Positions 1-41,493 of a stretch of 50,543 bases of DNA are shown in pieces. Source of the stretch: Ministeria vibrans ATCC 50519 (Eukaryota > Protista > Filasterea); NCBI GenBank assembly GCA_943704425.1, contig CALSCP010001664.1, positions 1 to 50,543 on the forward strand. The letters run 5' to 3'. Each line of letters begins with the position of its first letter. The first letter of the stretch is position 1. Under the pieces are notes generated by a model. It was not told where the DNA came from, made no database searches, and saw only the letters and a list, made by a program, of their open reading frames with translations. The position numbers were made by a program, and so were the translations under genes.

Positions 1-82
<82 letters not shown>

Positions 83-101
83 CCACTCTCTCTCACCCTC
101 T
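1..101. repeat. (CT)n microsatellite
   Basis: Direct reading: ~34 perfect CT units, then degenerate. Confidence 0.97.
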
Positions 102-134
102 CAGTTGTTGTCATTCATGTGAGCGTCGTCGCCC

Positions 135-890
135 CTATTGTTGCTCGTCTTGATACCATCTTTCGGCCTTCTCGTTTCCGCTCAAACTCTTCTTCCCGCC
201 ATACAGCTCCTCGAAGTGAGTTTTGACTGCTTCCATCGCCTCCTCGCCTGACGCCACCCGCTTCTCCTTCGTAGTTGGGTCGGTCCAAACCACCGTGGTC
301 GCCTGAACAGTTTCCATTTTAGCGAAGGGTGTCGTGGTGCTACCGCCTTTGACCATCTGGTAAAAGGCCCGCTTCTTCTGCTCTTCGAACTCCGTGTCCT
401 TCTTTTTCTTCCAAGCGGATCATTTCTTGGCAGTATGTGTCCGCAACACCGTCTTCAACCTTGTTTTCAGCTCCTCAACTTCCTCTCTGTTGGCGCCATC
501 TCTTTTTGCCTGTCGTAAACTTGCAAGTATGTCACGTACCGTCGCCTTAAACCACATTGAATGTGTCGTCGCGCCCTCTTCTTCCCTCCCGTTTTCTTTG
601 CTCATGTCCTGCTTTTTGTTCGCATTCTTCTTGTTCAGATAGAAAACGCAACATTGGTCTTGGAGCTCTGAGTACATCTGGCTCACTGCCTTTGCTTTCT
701 TCCAGGCATCCCACCTTTGTCGCGTTTGATCTACCCATCTGTTCAGTTTTCCCTTTTTCCTATCCTCTATCTCCTTTTGTTTCCCCTTGCTCAAATTCGC
801 CAGCTTGTTTGACCATGTTGGGCCCAAAGACTCTCGCACTTCGAGCGATTCGGCCTGACGTTGGTTCTCCCTGTTCCTTTCCTCTTCTTC
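135..890 (-). mobile_element. Degenerate ORF, possibly a non-LTR retrotransposon ORF2 fragment (linker upstream of the RT)
   Basis: ORFs 420..1127 and 135..356 are in the same frame, separated by one TGA (TAKK*SAWKKKKDTEFEEQKKRAFYQMVKGG...AVKTHFEELY). The K/E-rich helical stretch with 'FYQMVK...HFEELY' resembles the LINE pre-RT region. No RT motif is visible. Confidence 0.35.
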
Positions 891-1012
891 CATCTGACTA
901 CCTGAGTCAAAGTCTTGCACCCTTGCCCGGATCGCCACTGTGACCAATGTGTGGTCTGAGAGAGCACTCTCCGTTCTCCTTTTTTTTTTTTTAAATTCAA
1001 CTTTCAGGGTTA

Positions 1013-1200
1013 GCACTATGCACACTAAGCACAGTGGGCACACTAAGCACACTAAGCACACTAAGCACACACTAAGCACACACACACTAAACACACACGC
1101 TAAGCCCACTAAGCACACTAAGCGCACTAAACACTAAGCACACACACACACTGAACACATACTAACCACACACACTAACGACACACTAAGCACACACACA
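1013..1200. repeat. Degenerate tandem repeat (CACTAAGCA / CA-rich units)
   Basis: Repeated 'cactaagca' units interspersed with (CA)n. Confidence 0.9.
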
Positions 1201-1654
1201 CGATTTCTCTCGCTCTCTGAGTCTTGAATCTTGAACTTTCTCTGTATCTTTGTCCCTTTTTCTACCCTCCCTTGATGCCTCTCTAATTTTCGTTGCTTTC
1301 CCTTAAACTCTCGTTATCTCTTTCTTTACCCTGTGCGAACTCTTCATTCCCTCCCTCTCAGGCGAAGCGATGTTCGACTCCCTCCCGGCCCTTTTCATGG
1401 GCTCCGAGTCCCTCTACCTCGTCGTCTTCGATCTCTCCGCCATGTCTGACCCAACAACCGCCCAGCGCCAGTACGAACACATTTCCAAGTGGGCGCGGAG
1501 TGCGCCGGACTCCCTAATAAGGGTGTCACAGGTTGGTCGAAACAGGACATGACTAATAGCAGGAGCGACCAGGGTACCATGTCAAACTCCGAGTTTTACG
1601 CCAACCCGGACGTTTGCGATATCGCCGTTTACGGACCGTTTACTACGCGNNNNN

Positions 1655-2399
1655 CTCCGCGCCTCTTCACTGATTTTTTGCGACGTCCCGACTTGTTCGG
1701 CCGCATTTCCATTGACTGCACTACCGGCTTCGTGTGGCGGTTCTTTCCCGCGTCCACCACCACCACCGACACTTCCAGAGGCTCCTTGTGATGCCAGCGA
1801 CGGCGTGCACGTTGCGGCGTGCGCGTCGGGCGCGACGGGCTGCGCGAAACGCTGTGCGTTGGGTCGAGCGAAAATTTTTCTTCTTGCTTGTATCTTAGGA
1901 GCACCGCTGACCAACCTCCGTCCGAGTTTGGAATGTTGGTGACCCAGATATTGTTGTCGTGAACGTTGCCTGAGTGGTGACGTAGCTCGTTGGCGCTCTG
2001 GGGCAGAAAGTGGAGCGCGCGCTGGTCGCCGTTCCACTTTACTGAGACAAAATGCCGCTGTCCGGCGCCCCTCAGTGCCTCAGCGTACGACGGCTCACGG
2101 GTCGAGTGGCACACGTCCAAGGCCTGCAGCTGGGCCTTGATCGCGGCGGTCACCTCAACGCGTTTCAGGGATTCGGAATGAAAGATTTCAAACTGCATCG
2201 AGATGTCCGCATATTTGAAAATCGATCGTCCGATGGTCAACCCCCAGCGGCCGATATGGTTCATCACCGCGTCCACACGGTCCGAACGCACCGTGACTAC
2301 CACTCCGGGGCGCGCGTCGGCCAGCACGCGGACCGGAACCGGCGCAATGGGGCTCTCGGGTGACCGCTGCACGTCGACCCTCGTTCCCACAGATATCAC
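1655..2399 (-). CDS. Hypothetical ORF of unknown function within the inserted segment
   Basis: ~250 open codons with plausible composition; no motif recognised; runs into the N-gap. Confidence 0.25.
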
Positions 2400-2404
2400 G
2401 TCAC

Positions 2405-2438
2405 CCCTAACCCTAACCCTAACCCTAACCCTAACCCT
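2405..2438. repeat. Interstitial telomere-type repeat (CCCTAA)5.7
   Basis: Five perfect CCCTAA units plus CCCT. Confidence 0.92.
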
Positions 2439-2565
2439 GGTTGTATAGGTGAAAGAGAGTAGAGTTGAAGAAGAGATTCACAGCAATTAGCGCGTGGGTA
2501 CTCACTGGGTACGCGTGAGCACCTTTCTATATCTCGCCTCCCGGCCTATCTCCTCTCCCAGCTCA

Positions 2566-2629
2566 CGCTATCCAGTGAGGCAATCGCAATGGTACGCCAT
2601 ACCCCCAGTGGGGGCTTAGGGCTCTGACA
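2566..2629 (-). repeat. 64-bp dispersed repeat, copy 1
   Basis: Reverse complement matches 41494-41557 at 62/64 positions. Confidence 0.9.
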
Positions 2630-2836
2630 CCATGAAGGTGTCTGTCGGCAAGGAGTGTAAAAGTTGATTTCGTGGTTGAGGCAATCGGATCGGTGGTCGG
2701 CGGCGGCAAGTCCAGGTGGCTGCGGGGCGCTCCCGTGGTACACAGGCGGGGCGTTATTAGAAGAAGAAGAAGGGATACAACCTCCATACAACCCATTTAA
2801 TGATACTTATTACTTCGTATGTATCGCTTCTTCTAA

Positions 2837-2884
2837 CCCTGACACACCCTGACACACCCTGACACACCCTGACACACCCTGACA
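2837..2884. repeat. 10-bp tandem repeat (CCCTGACACA)~4.8, followed by scattered CCTGA motifs to ~2995
   Basis: Direct reading. Confidence 0.9.
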
Positions 2885-3014
2885 GGCTGACACACCTTGA
2901 TCACTCCTGATCAACCTGGTTGATCCTGACGCTGACTGGCGGCAAGATTCAGGGGTTGATCCTGTAAGGGTAACCCTGACAGGATTTTGTCAGGATTTTT
3001 AGCAAAGGGAATCC

Positions 3015-3167
3015 GGAGTGCGCCGGACTCCTTAATAAGGGTGTCACAGGTTGGTCAAAACAGGACATGACTAATAGCAGGAGCGACCAGGGTACCATGT
3101 CAAACTCCGAGTTTTACGCCAACCCGGACGTTTGCGATATCGCCGTTTACGGACCGTTTACTACGCG
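3015..3167 (+). repeat. Second copy of the transposon left end
   Basis: Near-identical to 1497-1649 (two substitutions seen). The first copy stops at the N-gap 1650-1654. Confidence 0.93.
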
Positions 3168-3426
3168 AAGAAGGCCTGTTCTGGTGTCCCTGAGAGAGGC
3201 GACGCTATTTAAGCCGTAAAAATGTCGTGTGAATGGGATGTGAAAGTACAAAATAGTGCGAAAGAGAATGACAAAAGTTGTGGGGCGGTGAATAAACCGA
3301 GTTACCGAGAAAGGTCAAAGTCACATTTCTCTTCGACCGTTGCTTTGTGGCATGAATGTGGCTGTCCTTGTGCAGTTTCAAGTAGAGCGAAATTCCTATT
3401 TTGAGACTGGTATGAAAGACCAGACG

Positions 3427-3460
<34 letters not shown>

Positions 3461-3578
3461 GAAATAACACCACTAACGGACGTCTAACTCCCCTCTAACC
3501 ATCCACCGGGGCCTCGTAGCCAACTGCGTTCCAGTAGAAGCTACCATTCGGCGGCAGCAAGCCTTCGCCGAACTCGAA

Positions 3579-4971
3579 ATGCTCGTGAAAGACTCGTTTG
3601 GCAATAACGCCGCGTTGGGACACATCTTCCTTGAGCGTCCACCGCCACGGCGCCGCATTGCCCACAGTGCTCTCACGCCTGAGGCCTTTGATCGCTGGCT
3701 GGAGCGGTGTGGGCAGCACGAGTTGCTCGAGTTTCTCCTAGAAGTTCGTCACCGTCTTGATTTGCATGAACCCACCCAACTCGCCGACGTGCAAGTCGCT
3801 GGAGCTGACGACAGCGGCGCCCCCGGACCAGCCGGGGGTGGCACTGCCCCGGCCAAGCGTGCACACGAGAGCGACGGCGACATCAACGACGGCGGCAGCG
3901 ACAGCCGGCAGCGTAAGAAGCGGGCGTCGACGCCAGCTCAGATCGGCGAGCTCTCGTCAACGAGAAGCGTGTCACAGTGTGTACATCTTCCGACCGGCTC
4001 CGACGAGTACAAGCACAGCTCAAGGCGGTGCAGAAACCACGAGCGACCGATGGTGGGTCTAGCGAGGTGGGCGTGGTGAAGACAGGAAGCGTGCTCGCCC
4101 TGCTCTTTGACATCTCGCGATCGTGCCCGGTGGCTGAGCGCGAAGAGCGTGCCGAGCGGGCGACGACGCTGGACCAGCTGCGGCGTTTTCGAATTGCATT
4201 CGGGGGAGTGTTGCTCACTTGACTATGTCGAGGCGGGTCGGGGCGGCGGATTCGAGCCGAGAGAAGAGGCTAGCGGTGGAAGAGGCATCCCTATCGATGT
4301 GTGACGCGACACGAGACACCGTCAAGGTGTCTTACATTGAGTTGACTGGATCATTGGTGGTGACATTGCCGCGCACTGAGGGCGAGCAGCCACAAGGGGC
4401 GGATCATTGGCTGTGGGAAGAGAGCGGCATTCGCATGCGGACTGCGAACGATACGGTGGCTGCAGAGCGGCATCTGGCCGACGTCTGTGGAGTACACGGT
4501 GTGGCACAGATTGAGCAGGTGTCGCTATCGTCTGTGATCACGGTGTGCAACGTAGACGCAGCGATGCAGCTGACGCCGGACAAGCTAACGCTGGACAACG
4601 TGGAGTTGGAGCGGATCAAGTCCTGCGCGAGGGAGTCGATCATGGCGATCGTCGAGAGCGAGCTCGTGCGCCATCGTCCGCTTGCAACGGCCGCTGCGGC
4701 CCGGCCGTCAGCCGAGCCGATGTTGCATACTTCTGCAACCGACACTTCTCTACCAGCATCACCAACGCCAACGGCGTCTCCGCCTGGCCGCCAGCGGCTG
4801 GTGGATCAAGCTACGACTGCAACTCCCGTCGCCGAATCTGCGCCACCAACTCGCGCATCTCGCCGGGAGGGCGCCGGTGGACTCGGTGCAGTACAGCGTG
4901 CAGCTGCCGAGGAAGCCCACGGCCTCGTCGACGTGTTAGATGATGATCTCGTCAAAATGAACACGACTTGA
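3579..4971 (+). other. Fragmented ORFs inside the transposon (3579-4079, 3977-4222, 4219-4971); cargo or decayed gene
   Basis: GC-rich, coding-like tract broken over three ORFs; no recognisable domain. Confidence 0.3.
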
Positions 4972-7766
4972 AATATTTTTTAATTTTTTTTTTCAATTTT
5001 TTTTTGTCTAACGTCGCCCTATCGTCAGTAGGCTACATGAATGAGTGTTGTAGAAGCCTCCGATGAGGGTAAAATGTACTTTTCTTGCTCCTCAACGAGG
5101 TACCAGGTCAGAAATCCGATTTTGGTTATAACCGGAGTGGGACAGAGTCCGGCGCACTCCGTGGGCGCACATGATTATGCACCAAGTCCCCGCTACGGAG
5201 CACTCCTACTTCAAAGTCATCATCGTCGCCACCCACCTCGACACCTTCCCCGACAACACAGCTCCAGCCGCTCTCCTCCAGAGAGTCTCAGATGCGGTTT
5301 TCGGTCTTGTCGGCGCGGTCTTGGGTAATCACCTCATGCGACCAAGCGGCCCCACCTCCCTCGCGTTCTTTGCAGTCGGCAGCAAGAAAAGGATCGGACT
5401 AGGACAACTTTCAAAGGCGATGCATGATGCTGTGCGCCCGCGTACTCTACCCATGGAGTATGTCTGTGTGCAAGACCTGATTGGGCGCCGCGCACGAGAG
5501 AAGAAGATCGCGCTCATGTCGCGCGTGTCAGATCTCAGCTCACTCGTTCTCAACGACGACCCTCGCATCACTCTTTCTGCATTGATTCCGGACGGCTCGC
5601 TGATCCGCACTGAACTGGTACCCTATCTGGAGTCTGCCGCAGACATTGTGGTGTGCCGTGAGAACGCGACGTCTCAAGATGTGCGCGAGACGGACACAGT
5701 CGTCTTTGACATCCCTCATCTGATTGCGGCGCTAGAACTGCTCTGCTCGGTGGTGTTGGCGCGATGGGGACGGGCTTCAAGCACCCGTGCCCTGGACATG
5801 CTCAAGAAAGTCGTCGAGGCGGGTCGTGCTTCCGATCTGTCTCGCACAGAGAAAATCCTACAGAGACTCTGGACGAGTCGCGCACAACGTCTGCGGCGGG
5901 ATTTCCCCTCGAAGCGGCGGAGTGGCTCGTGTGGACGGCGGCCAAAGACAGCAAGGACTCCCTACTCTGTGGCGGTGATGTGGGTGACGTTGGCACGTTC
6001 ATGGAGTGTCTGGAGCACCTGAGTCTGGCGAAGCGTCACGGGGACTTCCTGTTGGTGCCCATGCTGCTGCCCGACGACGCTTCCTTCTCCTCCAGCGCCT
6101 CGCCCGCCCCTGCTGTTCTGTTCCTCTACCAGATGATAAGCAGTGCCGCCGGCGACTGGGAGGTGCTTCCCGTGTCCCTCGCCACATTTCATCTGGTGGT
6201 GGTGGCACTGTGGCGCGCATGTCCGCCTGACAGTCCCATCGAAGCGACTCAACGATGCACCAATGCACTTGCCATGGACGGATGTGTCCCTGTGCGACTT
6301 CGACTCAGCAGCAACGAGCGGTTCATTCGTGTGGAATTGCTGAGTGAGGCGCCAGGCAAGTGTGGAGCGACGTGGACGAAGTTGGTTGAGACTGTGTGTG
6401 AGTCGACGCGCACTCTGCGGTGGGGTTGGCGCGGCTCTGCTGTGGTGGTACCCGCACACCCCACCGACGCATTCCGTCCACTCTTCGTTCCCGAAAGTGT
6501 CGCCAAGTGCCCCGAGCGGTACCGAGACGGAGACGTGGTGAGAGCAGAGCTTGTGTGTCACTCTGGACAAGCTCTGGCGTGCAATCTAAATCTTCAGAAG
6601 TGGTGGGTGAAACGAAACGGTAAGTTTTTTTCTCTTTAGTCATGACATTCATCATTAATTATTTTCTTGTTAGTTCCTGGCATCTACTCGCATGTGTCTG
6701 TGCTGATTGTGGGAGTGAGTCGCTACCAGTCGTCGGGCAACACTGCGCTTCAGTACTATGATGACTTGCGAGGCGTGCGTGAGAGTGCTCGACTACTCAA
6801 TGACGTGTGGACGAAGCGAGGGTGCGATGTGGAGAGTGTGGTGGACTGGAAGAAAGGCGATCGGGTGGTCCGGAGTCAGATTGTGGACGCGATGCATCGA
6901 CTGGCAATGAGAGCAGGATCGATTGCTGGACAAGAATCACTGTTGATTGTGCATCTGATTGGACATGGAGCCGAGGATGGCACTGGCGGGTTGTTGCTGA
7001 GTGACGCGCGCGAGACAGTGAGCGGTCGTCTGTCGCGCCTGACTCTGCGCAATCTCAATACGATCCTTCAAGAAGACGTGTTCTGGCTGGGTGGCAATGC
7101 GTTGGTGTTCTGCGACTTCTGCAACAGTGGCGTGTTCATTGAGCCCGACGAGGACCTCACACCATCACTGCCCACCCAGCGCACTCCATCAGTGCCTCCG
7201 GTTCAAAGGGGTGTCTATGCGCGCCAACTCATCACAAGCGCACTCAAAGACACTAAAGCATTCACCACAGCAGACCGCAGCAAAACTCGCATGACTGAGC
7301 TGCTAGTCCTGGCATTGGGCCCCGACCGACGGGCCTTCCATGAGGGCGAGGAGTGCGTGACTGCGGTTGAGCTGCGGCATCGACTGCAGTTGCTGGACTC
7401 TGCGAACACATTTCAGTCTGCGCTGGTGGGGCGTATTTGGAAGGACTGGACTGCGGGAATGGTCAACAGCGGAGATATCTACTTGTACCGATGGGGGTGT
7501 GGAGTGAAAGAGTGAAGAGAGAGAGAGAGAGGGGGAGACGATGAAGAGCGATCACATTTTATTATTTCATTACTTCTATCGTCACAATACAATAATAATT
7601 ACGTTAATCCATACCAAAAAAAGGCCGTGATTCTGACTGTTATCAGCAGCGAAGTGACCTAAGTAGTAGGACCTTTCACCGCTTCAGTCGTCGCCTTCTT
7701 CAGCATCTTACTTACTCTTCGGACCCCTCTGTTTGACTCCTGTCGCCCGGTATCCCGTGATTAGTC

Positions 7767-8392: not shown

Positions 8393-9470
8393 AAGACAAT
8401 CTAGCCATCCGAAGCGGCTGCTTCACCCCCGCATGGGCCGAAGCGGACATTCCGAGAGACTTGCATGCTAAGCCATTCANNNNNNNNNNNNNNNNNNNNN
8501 NNNNNNNNNNNNNNNNNNNNNNNNNNNNNNNNNNNNNNNNNNNNNNNNNNNNNNNNNNNNNNNNNNNNNNNNNNNNNNNNNNNNNNNNNNNNNNNNNNNN
8601 NNNNNNNNNNNNNNNNNNNNNNNNNNNNNNNNNNNNNNNNNNNNNNNNNNNNNNNNNNNNNNNNNNNNNNNNNNNNNNNNNNNNNNNNNNNNNNNNNNNN
8701 NNNNNNNNNNNNNNNNNNNNNNNNNNNNNNNNNNNNNNNNNNNNNNNNNNNNNNNNNACAAACACCAGGATCAGGCAGCAACCTACTGACGCCGCTGCCA
8801 CTCCCTGTAATGCTCATACGCCGCCTCCAGGCACTGTCTCGCAGCCGCTACTGCATCTTTTCGAGCGTAGGCTGGGATGCGACGCGTCATGGCCAACGAC
8901 CAGCAACCAGACACCAAGTGCAGGGCGGGTTGGTCATCACACTCATTCCTATGACTGAGGCGTACCGTACTACTGCAAAAAAGACACTGATTGACACGAA
9001 ATTGTTCGGACACTGATCACATTGAAGGGACGGGCTCGAAATCAAATGTCCGCTTTAATCATCCCTCTTGCGCGTCCACGGGATACAATAGCACGTCTGT
9101 CGCTATATGTGGTGGAAGACGAAAGACAAATGCAGTAGACTGCTAGACACTGCTTGCCGTTGCTCATGCAGCCGCCTGAGCAACGCCTCGGTAACACCTC
9201 TGTTGTAGTATCTCTCTATGATCAAATACACATTTGGATCACGTTTTGTATGCTACCGCTTCAACATTGCAGTTTCCACTTCCGCTCTACTTCTCCTTGG
9301 ATCGAATCACATTTGATCACAATCGAAACTCCGTTCATTCAAATCAGTTCAAGCAGTACCACCAATCCCTGACCAGTGAGTGACCATGGTATGGAGGTGT
9401 CAGAGCCACCTCTTTCCTTTGATTTGTAGTAGCTGGTTTGATTTTGTAATTATTCTCATGACTGTGATTT

Positions 9471-9775: not shown

Positions 9776-12700
9776 CTACATGGCAAACGCCCAATTGTCG
9801 GTTCGCACAAAACCCCGTTGAACAGTCTCGACGCAACGCATGGAGCACAGCTCGTAGGCCAATGGTACACGAGTACCAGAGATGTAAACAAAAGAGACGA
9901 GCTTGGCGGGCGACTCAAAGTACCGACGCGCACAGATGAAGCAGCGATGGGGCGCATTAAGGTAGGACAGGACGTTGGCGGTGACGCGATCTGCGACTGA
10001 CAGCTGCGCGTGTGTCTCCCATACTCGCTGTGCACACAGCGCAAACAGCGACGGTGGCTCGTACGTCTGCGCAAAGTCATCGGTGCCCTCGCACAGAGGA
10101 TTGTCCGAAATACGTAGGGTGCGCAGGGAGGCGCGTGCGAGAATGCGAATGTGAGGCGGGAGTGTGACGAGTTTGTTGTCGCTGAGGAGGAGCGTGTGCA
10201 ACTTGTGCATCTGGCCAATGGACGACGGTAGCGAATCCAAGTGGTTGCTCGAGGCGTCAAGGCACTCGAGCTTCTCCATGCTTCCGATGCTATTGAGCTG
10301 CGTTAGACGGTTGTGTGACACGTTGAGGACGCGCAGACCGTGCAGGTCGGCAAGGGCGCGTGGCAAAGACGAGAGCATATTGTGGTCGAGACAAAGCTCA
10401 GTGAGGCCTGACATCAGACACACCTCTAGCGGCACCATGGCAAAGCGGTTGTGACTAAGTACCAGCGACTGGAGTGCCGTGAGACGACTGAAGCTTGCTG
10501 GCAGCGTCGACAGATGGTTGCAGTGGAAAGAGACAGCCTTGAGGCGCGTGAGGTCGCCAAAGTCGTCGGGCAGCTCAAGAAGACAGTTGTCGTTCAGCGT
10601 GAGCTTGCACACACTGCGCGGCAGACTACCCGAAGGCAACAAAGACAAGTGGTTGTGATCGAGCGAGAGGACTTCGAGACAAGGAAGTTGACCAAGCTCG
10701 CGTGGGATCGTTGTGAGTTTGTTGTGATGCAAGTGAAGCGTGGTAAGGCGCTGCAGCGACCCAAGACTCGGTGGCAAACTTGTCAGTTTGTTACCGTGTA
10801 TCCACAATTTGCGCAGGTTCCGTAGTGTGTGCACATAGTCGACGGTGGTCAGACGGTTGTTGTCAAGCAGAAGCATTTCGAGACCGGGAAAGCGCATGAG
10901 GTCTTTGGGCAGCTTACGCAGCGAATTGTTACTCAACGGTAGCAGAGTCACCTTGAGAGGGAACCCCGTACGGCGAATCATCTTCTTGACAGCATCCGCA
11001 CTGAGACCGAGTGCACGGCCCAGCTTGTTGAGCGCTTCGCAGTCACTCTCACCCGACACCTGCGCCGCATCGTCCTCGAGCGACATGTGACGCACGCCCT
11101 GTGCTAGCGCGCGCGTAAAGGGATGCGGCGAGGCTGAGTCGTCATACGACAGCATGGCACTGGTGTTTGCATGGTCGCTGTCATACACACCGCCGTCCAG
11201 GTACTGGTCGACAATATCGTCGTCGTCGTCGTCGTCGTCATCCTCCTCCTCCTGGTCGTCATGGCTATCGGCGTTCACACCCGACTCGCGACTCTGCTTG
11301 CCACCACCCACCAAGTCGTCACGTGCGCGCAGGCGGCCCAAGATGTGAGACACGGACGAGGCCGAGGCGGAATGTCGCATGAGTGAAGTAGGGGGCATGG
11401 AAACGATGCGACGGCGCACGTGATTGCCTCGGCCGCGCTGTCGATGATACTCGCTTGGGCGCAGCACCTCCTCTTCGTAGACGCCACCACCCCGATGGCC
11501 TCGCTCCAGGATGTTAATGTCCTGCGGCGTGAGCGGTCGTGGCGGAGGTGGTGCACGAGGAACTGTTGGAGGGCGCAGGTTTCGGCGTGCACTCATGGCA
11601 GGTGACTCGCCATCGAGCATACGAGCGTCGACACCACGTGTTGCAGAAACACTGACGCTGCTACTCCCTCTCGGCTGCGTGGATGGGGCGGAGGTGGCAG
11701 GAACAACCGACGATGCACTGGTGGAAGGTGAAGTGCGAGGAGAAGAACAATGCAGGAAGACCTCGCTGTCTGAATAGCGACGTCTGTGAGCCATGACAAT
11801 GCCTGGAAAACGTTCGCGTCGATGAATGCGAGATGAAGCGGGTGGCGAGCGAATAGTGTCCTCTAGATCGGCGTCGGTGGCTCCATCGGAGACGGGTGAA
11901 GATCCTCGAGATGAGGGAAGCGCCGAGGATGATGATGATGCTGATGATGATGATGATGGCGATGATGATGCTGTCGAGGGTAGCGAAGAGTGGGGTATGG
12001 CTCGTGAATCAAGATGAGCGGTCACTTCCAGGTCCATTGGCGTCGCCGTTGTCGCTGCTGCAACCGCTGATGATGAAGATGTCAATAACATGTCTGAACT
12101 CGGCGGTGAGTTTGTCGTGGTCGTTGTGGTTGTGGTAGTGGTCGTGGCGAGCATGGCCGTAACGGTGGTAGTGGTGGTCATAGTGGAGGATGGCGACGCC
12201 AAAGTCGCCGCTGAGGTCGTCGACGACGACGGCAATGCCATCGGTTCAACCAAGTTGCCACTGAATGTTTTGAGAACATGACGATGTCCTGCAGCGTCAG
12301 CCAGTTCGAGAAGAGGCGCAGAGAGAACGGGCGTCGACGGTGACGAGTTGGTCAAGGCTCCGTCCGTTTCGAGAACAAGTTGACGGATGGAGCCACGGGC
12401 GGCGCGTTGCAATCGATTGAGGTGACTTTGTGCGCGGATGCGCACACGACGCGCTGTTGAGTGTATGAGGTTGCGTTGCATTTCGTTGCCGCTCACGTCG
12501 TTGAGAAAACCCGCGCCACACAGCTCAATAAGTTGATCCGTTGTTTGTTGGAGAAGCTCGCCGTCGCCGAGAAGCTGTTCGACGGAACTAAGAAGTTTAG
12601 TGCGTTTGCGTGCGTGGCTGGCGTCGGGATCGGTCTCATCACGATCGTGGTTGTTCCTGTCATCGTCGTCGCGGTCGCCATCACCACCTCCATCGCCTTC

Positions 12701-12938
12701 ATTGTCATCGTCGTCGTCTCTGCGTCGTTTGGCTCCCTGCTCTGGCTCATACGTGAAGAGCTCGGACGACGAGCTGCCACCGTTGAGCGTCGACGAGTAG
12801 ACGGTGATGGGCACGGAGAGGTCGGGATACGCGTCGCGGTTGTCCATCAGCGTACTTGCTTCCTCGTACGACGGCACCTTGGCAATGCGCAGTACCGACC
12901 GCTGTCCTGGAATGACCTCATGGCATGGTAGCAACAGC
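9776..12938 (-). CDS. 3' exon of an IPT/TIG + LRR protein with an LRRC58-like Cys-rich C-terminus (5' exons at 21268-22432)
   Basis: Acceptor ttccgtag at 12939-12940. End of an IPT domain (LLLPCHEVIPG...VPITVY...ELFTYEP), long S/T/D-rich linker, ~13 LxxLxLxxNxL repeats, then PPSLFALCAQRV...YLNAPHRCFIC...YF...VPL..ELCSMRC. Confidence 0.85.
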
Positions 12939-13132
12939 CTACGGAAAGCACAAACACGCCAAAAATTATTATTATTATTACATAAAAAAACAAAAAAAAA
13001 AAAAACAAAAAAAAAACACACTTNNNNNNNNNNCGTCGCCGTGTGGTGCTAACGGCAAATGTTCGACAACGTCCAATGGCGACGTGGTATGTGCGTGTTC
13101 TGAGGCGAGAAAAACCCCATAAAAAGGCGTAC

Positions 13133-40723: not shown

Positions 40724-41493
40724 TCCTTTCGCAGTCTTTTTTTTTTTTTTTTTCACAAGTGAAAAGTGGATCCGAGCAGAGACTGGGGCGGTTGCTGGTT
40801 GAGATGGCAAGTGGGCGTGTGTCAGTGGGGTGTGTGTGTGTGTCAGCGGCTGCGTAGGCGCAAGAAATTGGCAATTGTTCACATTCAGGCGAGAATGCTT
40901 TTTTTTTTGTGTAAGATAAGGACATCCCGAGTAGAATATGTAGAGGATGGGAGCGGTGGAAAGGGCGACGGCTGTGAGATCAACTGACAATGGGCAATGT
41001 ATACTTGCGCGGCGTGGCGATGCGGGGCGGTTTGTCTGTTTGGTCAGTACCGTTAACGAAGCAAACTATTGATAGAGTCGCCCACCGACGCTGTGGATGC
41101 TGGGGGGGGGGGGGGGGGGNNNNNNNNNNNNNNNNNNNNNNNNNNNNNNNNNNNNNNNNNNNNNNNNNNNNNNNNNNNNNNNNNNNNNNNNNNNNNNNNN
41201 NNNNNNNNNNNNNNNNNNNNNNNNNNNNNNNNNNNNNNNNNNNNNNNNNNNNNNNNNNNNNNNNNNNNNNNNNNNNNNNNNNNNNNNNNNNNNNNNNNNN
41301 NNNNNNNNNNNNNNNNNNNNNNNNNNNNNNNNNNNNNNNNNNNNNNNNNNNNNNNNNNNNNNNNNNNNNNNNNNNNNNNNNNNNNNNNNNNNNNNNNNNN
41401 NNGCCGCTATCGCTCCCCACCGACTGATCGTTCTATATCCGCGTCTCCTCATCGATTCGCCCCGAGTTTACTCGTTAGACAGCTGTTACAGCT

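Follow-up and report, generated by a model that had tools for sequence, protein, structure and literature searches.

A probable recently inactivated member of a WD40-Roc-COR-caspase gene family in Ministeria vibrans

The window studied here is the whole 50,543-nucleotide stretch of contig CALSCP010001664.1 from Ministeria vibrans ATCC 50519, and close to its start (1362-7515) it carries the pieces of a broken gene for a Roc G domain, a COR domain and a caspase-like protease domain. This locus is likely to be a recently inactivated member of a lineage-specific WD40-Roc-COR-caspase family. The list of open reading frames (ORFs) and a three-frame translation show a 60-amino acid (aa) ORF from 1370, a 283-aa ORF at 5171-6022, a 291-aa ORF at 5764-6639, which lies in a frame different from that of the 283-aa ORF, and a 282-aa ORF at 6667-7515. 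The pieces 1362-1496, 5161-6619 and 6674-7515 are a single gene, and the features of the locus are the following:

1014-1361, forward strand: remnant of intron 1 (between the P-loop exon and exon 2); the blastn match to the paralogues C1260 and C312 begins at 1014-1021.
1362-1496, forward strand: first part of exon 2, Roc G domain just past the G3 motif (...LFMGSESLYLVVFDLS...KWA).
1497-5160, no strand assigned: inserted terminal inverted repeat (TIR) transposon of 3,664 bp, recognized by its absence from colinear paralogues, its TIRs and its target duplication.
5161-5446, forward strand: continuation of exon 2, remainder of the Roc G domain, which in a PDB profile search leads to the LRRK2 Roc domain.
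5447-6619, forward strand: COR domain with COR-A and COR-B (the boundary is approximate), interrupted by a frameshift and assigned by a fold search on a paralogue model and by hhalign.
6620-6673, forward strand: intron 2, 54 nt, GTAAGT...TTGTTAG, phase 1, placed by paralogue comparison and spliced contigs.
6674-7515, forward strand: exon 3, caspase-like (clan CD, C14-like) protease domain, assigned by the AlphaFold2 (AF2) fold and motif conservation.

Exon 2 starts at 1362, directly behind a CAG acceptor (1359-1361), and its first two bases finish a Gly codon that a phase-1 intron interrupts, the same phase as that of intron 1 in the intact paralogue L021. The segment 1362-1496 is 71-73% identical to an intact paralogue (tblastn), and a G4-like motif THLD is encoded at 5231-5242. 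The junction sequence of intron 2 is G/GTAAGT...TTGTTAG/TT, and the intron is in frame, yet it holds two stop codons. Exon 3 contains the catalytic-type codons for His (6964-6966, in GHG) and Cys (7120-7122, in DFCNSG) and ends with a stop codon at 7513-7515. An earlier reading of the same DNA, made from its letters alone (the sequence-only reading), had given the extent 1362-7515, the 6619/6674 junction and the positions of the His and Cys codons, and all of its coordinates hold.

Family members were sought in the window's own assembly (29.7 Mb, 2,860 contigs), the window exons being searched separately and not as a joined model. The caspase exon gave 60 matches with 35 near full-length places (42-93% identity) and the Roc/COR-A piece gave 43 matches with 31 near full-length places (46-92% identity), and the size of the family is at least 31-35 paralogous loci. 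When 25 loci were compared with one intact paralogue, three recurrent coding blocks were found, e1 (P-loop to DFAG, some 150-210 aa), e2 (some 530 aa) and e3 (some 280 aa). They are stop-free where found and complete at about 17 of these loci, and short spacers separate them, with reading frames that often differ. Intact paralogues include C2822, C985 and C1260. Upstream of e1, most paralogues bear an array of exons of about 126 nt with one WD40 repeat each, and PF00400 matches five single exons upstream of one paralogue (E 1e-7 to 1e-10). Both the paralogues and the N-terminal sensor for which the sequence-only reading had recommended a search were located. Two loci, L021 (1,044 aa; L021:2542-5676) and L022 (896 aa; L022:1562-4252), are natural open frames that read through, their introns happening to be in frame and stop-free.

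About 20 paralogues have a GT-AG intron (37-95 nt) where the window has intron 2, and in each it restores the reading frame, also where e2 and e3 are out of frame. Because such frame restoration is unexpected from chance or from two genes, e2, the intron and e3 belong to one gene. Contigs from public sequencing runs were compared with the region 5161-7600 only. A joint skipping exactly 54 nt (GT..AG) at 6619/6674 is present in contigs from runs X1 (2 contigs), X3 (2 contigs) and X5, the last being one 1,527-nt contig in which 5960-6618 is joined to 6673-7505, and a contig from run X14 (6526-6691) reads unspliced through intron 2. As no sampled genomic paralogue is without intron 2, the simplest reading of the joints in X1, X3 and X5 is that they represent spliced transcripts. 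The 54-nt intron proposed from the letters alone is thus borne out by about 20 paralogues and by the contigs of three runs, and the source is a eukaryote whose spliceosomal introns are short. An intronless kinetoplastid-type genome carrying a pseudogene or an RHS-like family was also considered and was dropped in view of the conserved GT-AG introns and the WD40 exons.

The same evidence bears on the possibility that the Roc-COR and caspase-like ORFs are two adjacent genes, a case that the sequence-only reading had named among those that would refute it. Most copies do have a stop between the two ORFs, leaving one open frame of about 280-300 aa and another of about 550-600 aa. However, the spacer is the frame-restoring intron described above, many of the loci concerned having their exons in different frames, L021 and L022 read straight across it, and the contigs of three runs, which omit exactly 54 nt, join exon 2 to exon 3. 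Two separate genes are therefore extremely improbable, and this explanation is close to refuted.

Exon 3 of the window was modelled with AF2 from an alignment of 24 paralogues, with a predicted local distance difference test (pLDDT) value of 87 and a predicted template modelling (pTM) score of 0.90. A Foldseek search with the model returned 246 PDB matches at E<=0.001, and all 49 listed are caspase-fold proteases, for example MALT1 (6e-8), caspase-9, caspase-8, yeast metacaspase and GSU0716. With VIA, Arabidopsis metacaspase-4 (Z 19.6, 212 residues aligned, root-mean-square deviation 3.1), MALT1 (Z 19.3) and caspase-9 (Z 18.0) were aligned to the model. Metacaspase-4 was also the only significant PDB profile match of the caspase family profile (E 0.0035), and the GHG and DxCxSG motifs of the family align with its catalytic GHG and DSCHSG. 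All 24 copies compared, that of the window among them, have His97 (GHG) and Cys149 (DFC). A metacaspase affinity is suggested by the DxC motif and the fold rank only, and from the resemblance of the DxC motif to that of metacaspases we presume a specificity for a basic residue (Arg/Lys) at P1. The closest ESM Atlas clusters of the caspase domain are all bacterial Peptidase_C14 (score 0.96), so that the domain looks bacterial-style, in line with what had been said of it from the letters. A Pfam search for Roc, COR and C14, recommended by the sequence-only reading as a check, gave a divided outcome: on the window's own ORF pieces there is nothing at E<=1 for any of the three, whereas C14 (PF00656) only just passes on L021, with 21.8 bits against a gathering score of 21.4. 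The Pfam outcome on the window pieces would, by itself, wrongly have led to rejection of the finding.

For the switch region, the AF2 model of L021 e1 plus e2 is confident over residues 210-731 (pLDDT 80-95). The best 28 Foldseek matches of this Roc-COR model are all Roco proteins, among which are LRRK1 (4.7e-10), the C. tepidum Roco protein (CtRoco, 6e-9), LRRK2, M. barkeri Roco2 and the COR-only entry 3dpt. In VIA alignments, 401 residues were matched to the RocCOR part of CtRoco (Z 14.1), 429-445 residues to LRRK1/2 (Z about 13) and 280 residues, within model residues 341-732, to COR alone (3dpt_B, Z 12.7); generic GTPases align over about 140 residues only, within model residues 154-338. 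An hhalign comparison of the family profile with a eukaryotic Roco protein gave a probability of 94% over 418 colinear columns running through Roc, COR-A and COR-B, and the weak PDB profile matches of the family are all to the LRRK2 Roc domain, the THLD motif being common to both. The G1 (GAxxAGKT/S) and G3 (DFAG) motifs are invariant in 11 of 11 intact paralogues and the G4-like THxD in 20 of 20 paralogues; the window copy retains only the part of the G domain after G3. On the basis of the G motifs and of a COR domain that, in the model, lies directly C-terminal of Roc, the members of the family are classed as predicted Roco proteins.

When the family profile was compared with 1.84 billion representative proteins, six proteins matched. 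Four of them are of the same family and come from marine-type ENA metagenome contigs, and the two others, the only matches outside the family among these representatives, are Roco proteins matched over Roc; one of these two is the Roco protein of the hhalign comparison. One of the ENA metagenome contigs carries WD40, e1, e2 and e3 ORFs in this order. Together with a small share in a seawater metatranscriptome, these contigs point to a marine eukaryote. A search for homologous proteins with the 1,044-aa ORF of L021 returned nothing, probably because public gene predictions for the family are as short as single exons and so lie outside the length limits of that search. The WD40-Roc-COR-caspase family is essentially unseen outside this genome. 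From the fold searches, the profile comparison, the conserved frame-restoring intron and the spliced contigs it is evident that the domains of one spliced gene do follow each other as Roc-COR-caspase, the order given by the sequence-only reading. In intact members, one spliced mRNA encodes an N-terminal WD40 propeller, a Roc domain with a disordered insert, a COR domain and a C-terminal caspase-like protease whose His/Cys dyad is intact.

The window copy carries several lesions. The transposon in exon 2 is flanked by a perfect 8-bp target duplication, GTGGGCGC (1489-1496 and 5161-5168), and ends in perfect TIRs of 16 nt (1497-1512 and 5145-5160). The closest paralogues, C1260 and C312 (85-94% identity), are colinear with the window on either side of 1497-5160 in blastn, with an 8-bp overlap and no insert. 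What had been described as a frame change in COR is a 2-bp CT insertion (5867-5868), which a three-way alignment with C1260 and C312 places in the window only. A contig from run X1 spans 5642-5939 with 0 differences to the window, the CT insertion included, and because this independent contig carries the same sequence, the insertion is real and no slip of the assembly; a contig from X3 without the insertion bears C312 variants and therefore derives from C312. The C312 copy (L026) is likewise broken, its caspase exon having a 65-bp insertion relative to the window and C1260.

Exon 1 (G1-G3/P-loop) and the WD40 exons have no match in window 1-1360, and no family homology was found upstream of 1014. 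About 95 bp separate the end of the P-loop exon (e1) in C1260 from the downstream position at which homology to the window sets in, and nothing similar to this exon is present in window 1-1013. The missing exons could have been lost by deletion or rearrangement, or could be located beyond the start of the contig. These results show that the window copy is a pseudogene, with a transposon in exon 2, a +2 frameshift in COR and no P-loop or WD40 exons on the contig. The sequence-only reading was thus right about the interruption by a transposon and about the frame change, but it had joined the pieces into one protein of a hidden working gene, and this protein is not whole, as the contig has neither the G1-G3 exon nor the WD40 exons.

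All four window exon pieces are stop-free, and the window copy retains each of the 112 residues of exon 2 that are invariant among 20 paralogues and each of the 43 family-invariant residues of exon 3 (155 across both exons). Its ratio of nonsynonymous to synonymous substitution (dN/dS) is 0.25 against C1260 and 0.23 against C312, at dS 0.13. With every invariant residue retained and a dN/dS of about 0.25, the pseudogene is young. The same values could be used to argue that the window copy is still functional, with the transposon removed from the transcript, the frameshift bypassed or a variant of the strain, and the 5' exons just beyond the start of the contig, which lies no more than 1,013 bases ahead of the last homology; the contigs presumed to be from RNA match the locus exactly, frameshift site included, with the splice visible. 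Against this explanation, the additional 2 bp lie in an independent contig without differences and are lacking in C1260 and C312, the 3.7-kb insertion is inside a coding exon and no sign of its splicing was obtained from the contigs, which were compared over 5161-7600 only, and window 1-1013 holds nothing like the P-loop exon, which in C1260 ends so close to the start of homology. A functional window copy is therefore very unlikely. As a recent pseudogene, it would be incapable of making the protein and may be a product of birth-and-death turnover in the family.

At the left end of the transposon, 154 nt are duplicated internally (1496-1649 = 3014-3167, 99%), and the segment between the two copies contains a telomere-like (CCCTAA)n tract (2405-2438) and 10-nt tandem repeats (2834-2900). 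Only the first 145 bp and the last 340 bp or so recur in the genome, the interior being unique. A hAT-like TIR transposon would be expected to have an 8-bp target duplication, short TIRs and a hAT transposase; the insertion has the 8-bp duplication and TIRs of 16 nt, Pfam found no transposase domain on its ORFs, and it is at most a candidate hAT-like element. Upstream of exon 2, the segment 1014-1201 is a dispersed repeat rich in CACTAAGC-type units, which matches over 50 places in the assembly (70-91% identity), and it is also found within intron 1 of C1260 and C312. The window has assembly gaps (runs of N) at 8480-8757 and 41120-41402, shorter runs elsewhere and 5 N within the transposon at 1650-1654. 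On the reverse strand, a 1,081-aa ORF occupies 9776-13021; the N-terminal half of its product is long and of low complexity, and a leucine-rich-repeat (LRR) array lies at the C-terminus.

Some other loci of the family depart from the common organization. In L023 (C2371), a 1,434-aa ORF (L023:2916-7220) consists of a duplicated Roc part, COR and a long TPR array (TPR_12, E 1e-133), and then of another COR-B-like piece; the caspase exon of this locus is in a different frame. Exon 2 of L036, L039 and L042 (C1887, C1080 and C883) is split at one and the same point (query residues 303-314 or thereabouts) by a same-frame spacer of 200-250 nt, which is either an extra intron or a segment inserted within COR. 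Directly upstream of the intact Roc-COR-caspase gene of L021 there is an ORF of at least 810 aa (L021:2-2434; C2822:47001-49433) with a weakly Roc-like N-terminus, NB-ARC (E 1e-8) and DUF7779, a different type of NTPase receptor. That it might be part of the same gene was ruled out, since no other paralogue has it upstream.

By analogy, the intact members could be sensor-switch-effector receptors in one chain. The variable WD40 propeller would bind a trigger, binding would alter the nucleotide state of Roc and the oligomeric state mediated by COR, and this change would release the protease domains or bring them together. The protease probably cuts after Arg or Lys, as its metacaspase-like DxC motif suggests, and a likely role would be in defence or regulated cell death. 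The GTP- or dimerization-gated protease activity and the immune role are predicted on the analogy with such receptors. Several observations speak against this interpretation or against parts of the evidence for it. In the AF2 model of L021 e1 plus e2, residues 1-206 are disordered and of low confidence; Pfam Roc on an intact paralogue stays just below its gathering score (26.4 bits against 27), and neither Pfam COR-A nor COR-B matches family members. The RNA status of runs X1, X3 and X5 is a guess, and the P-loop exon of the window copy could be off the start of the contig rather than deleted. GTP binding, oligomerization and proteolysis are themselves predicted functions, and metacaspase-like enzymes are often monomeric, so that activation by proximity is not assured. 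A predicted homodimer of two copies of the window caspase domain scored 0.20, against a mark of 0.32, which speaks neither for nor against a dimer.

A more ordinary role can also be considered, in which the family serves signalling or housekeeping (cytoskeleton, trafficking), like LRRK2 and the Dictyostelium Rocos, and the protease processes substrates in normal physiology or development. Characterized eukaryotic Rocos do have roles in trafficking, the cytoskeleton and development (reviews PMC6337361, PMC6320773), and nothing in the analysis ties the family to infection. However, dozens of paralogues at 45-60% identity are seldom required for housekeeping, and the at least 31-35 loci with pseudogenes, the transposon-rich setting, the variable sensor with one repeat per exon and the death-type protease match the pattern of NLR-like and bacterial conflict systems. 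We regard the housekeeping explanation as unlikely. More tentatively, and at somewhat less than even chances, the family may be a eukaryotic receptor family for immunity or cell death that is built on Roc-COR instead of STAND, with a caspase-fold executioner fused to the switch and a WD40 sensor diversified by shuffling of one-repeat exons; it would be an independent solution analogous to NLRs and may have arisen from bacterial Roc-COR-caspase conflict systems.

The importance of Roco proteins stems from LRRK2, and how Roc-COR governs an attached effector is still debated; caspase-fold proteases of protists have repeatedly been tied to cell death, without a known upstream switch. If the proposed working is correct, the family would offer a simple one-chain system for probing GTPase-gated protease activation and would add a non-STAND receptor class to comparative innate immunity. 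The window copy illustrates the turnover of such a family, with a fresh transposon insertion and a frameshift in an otherwise pristine gene.

Among known systems, LRRK1/LRRK2, DAPK1 and CtRoco are the best structural matches across Roc and COR (Z 12-14, 400-445 residues aligned), and the LRRK2 Roc domain shares with the family the G3-to-G4 pattern, THLD included. Unlike this group, the family has no kinase domain but a protease effector, its WD40 repeats are N-terminal and not C-terminal, and its G domain has a long disordered insert. Apaf-1/caspase-9, NLR inflammasomes and MALT1 are functional analogues in combining a repeat sensor, a nucleotide switch and a caspase-fold protease, and the family protease finds some of its best fold matches in MALT1 and caspase-9. 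In contrast to Apaf-1 and the NLRs, the switch of the family is a Ras-like GTPase and not a STAND ATPase, and the protease is fused and not recruited via CARD or death domains; Pfam found neither NB-ARC nor NACHT in family members, so that the likeness to NLRs is by analogy only. With metacaspases and bacterial orthocaspases (C14B) the family shares the GHG and DxCxSG-type motifs, and metacaspase-4 is the top fold match, whereas the sequences are about 15% identical, neither a metacaspase prodomain nor a linker was recognized and the protease is fused to Roc-COR.

The brown-algal ROCO genes form expanded Roc-COR families of proposed immune receptors, in which one repeat per exon allows exon shuffling (Zambounis et al., 2012, PMC3341825; Front Plant Sci 2024, PMC11378527), and one group of them has a C-terminal peptidase, IPR009003 (PMC11378527). 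These proteins have an LRR sensor and the IPR009003 peptidase, whereas the family described here has WD40 repeats and a caspase-like effector. We take the IPR009003 peptidase not to be of the caspase fold.

The sequence-only reading knew of no characterized eukaryotic example. In the literature searched, no description was found of a eukaryotic Roco protein with a C14 or caspase-fold domain, and to this extent the statement stands, but the brown-algal ROCO peptidase (PMC11378527) and the bacterial LRR-Roc-COR-caspase proteins (PMC8195603) are precedents. In the latter, which are bacterial LRR-AP-GTPase(Roc)-COR conflict proteins, the C-terminal slot is occupied by at least 24 different domains, caspase included (Kaur, Iyer, Burroughs, Aravind, eLife 2021, PMC8195603). 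The likeness consists of a single chain in which a caspase-fold effector comes after a Roc-COR switch, of an N-terminal repeat sensor and of several paralogues per genome. A further lead, and no more than that, is an ESM Atlas cluster of cyanobacterial COR-A/COR-B/CHAT proteins of about 900 aa, the nearest look-alike of L022 (score 0.80). Compared with the bacterial LRR-Roc-COR proteins, the family is eukaryotic, has spliceosomal introns, a WD40 and not an LRR sensor, and dozens of copies, and no sequence-level kinship with the bacterial Roc-COR systems was detected past the Roc domain. The family is a eukaryotic version of a design already described in bacteria, and if its proposed working is true, it extends to eukaryotes a design that has so far been described only computationally in bacteria.

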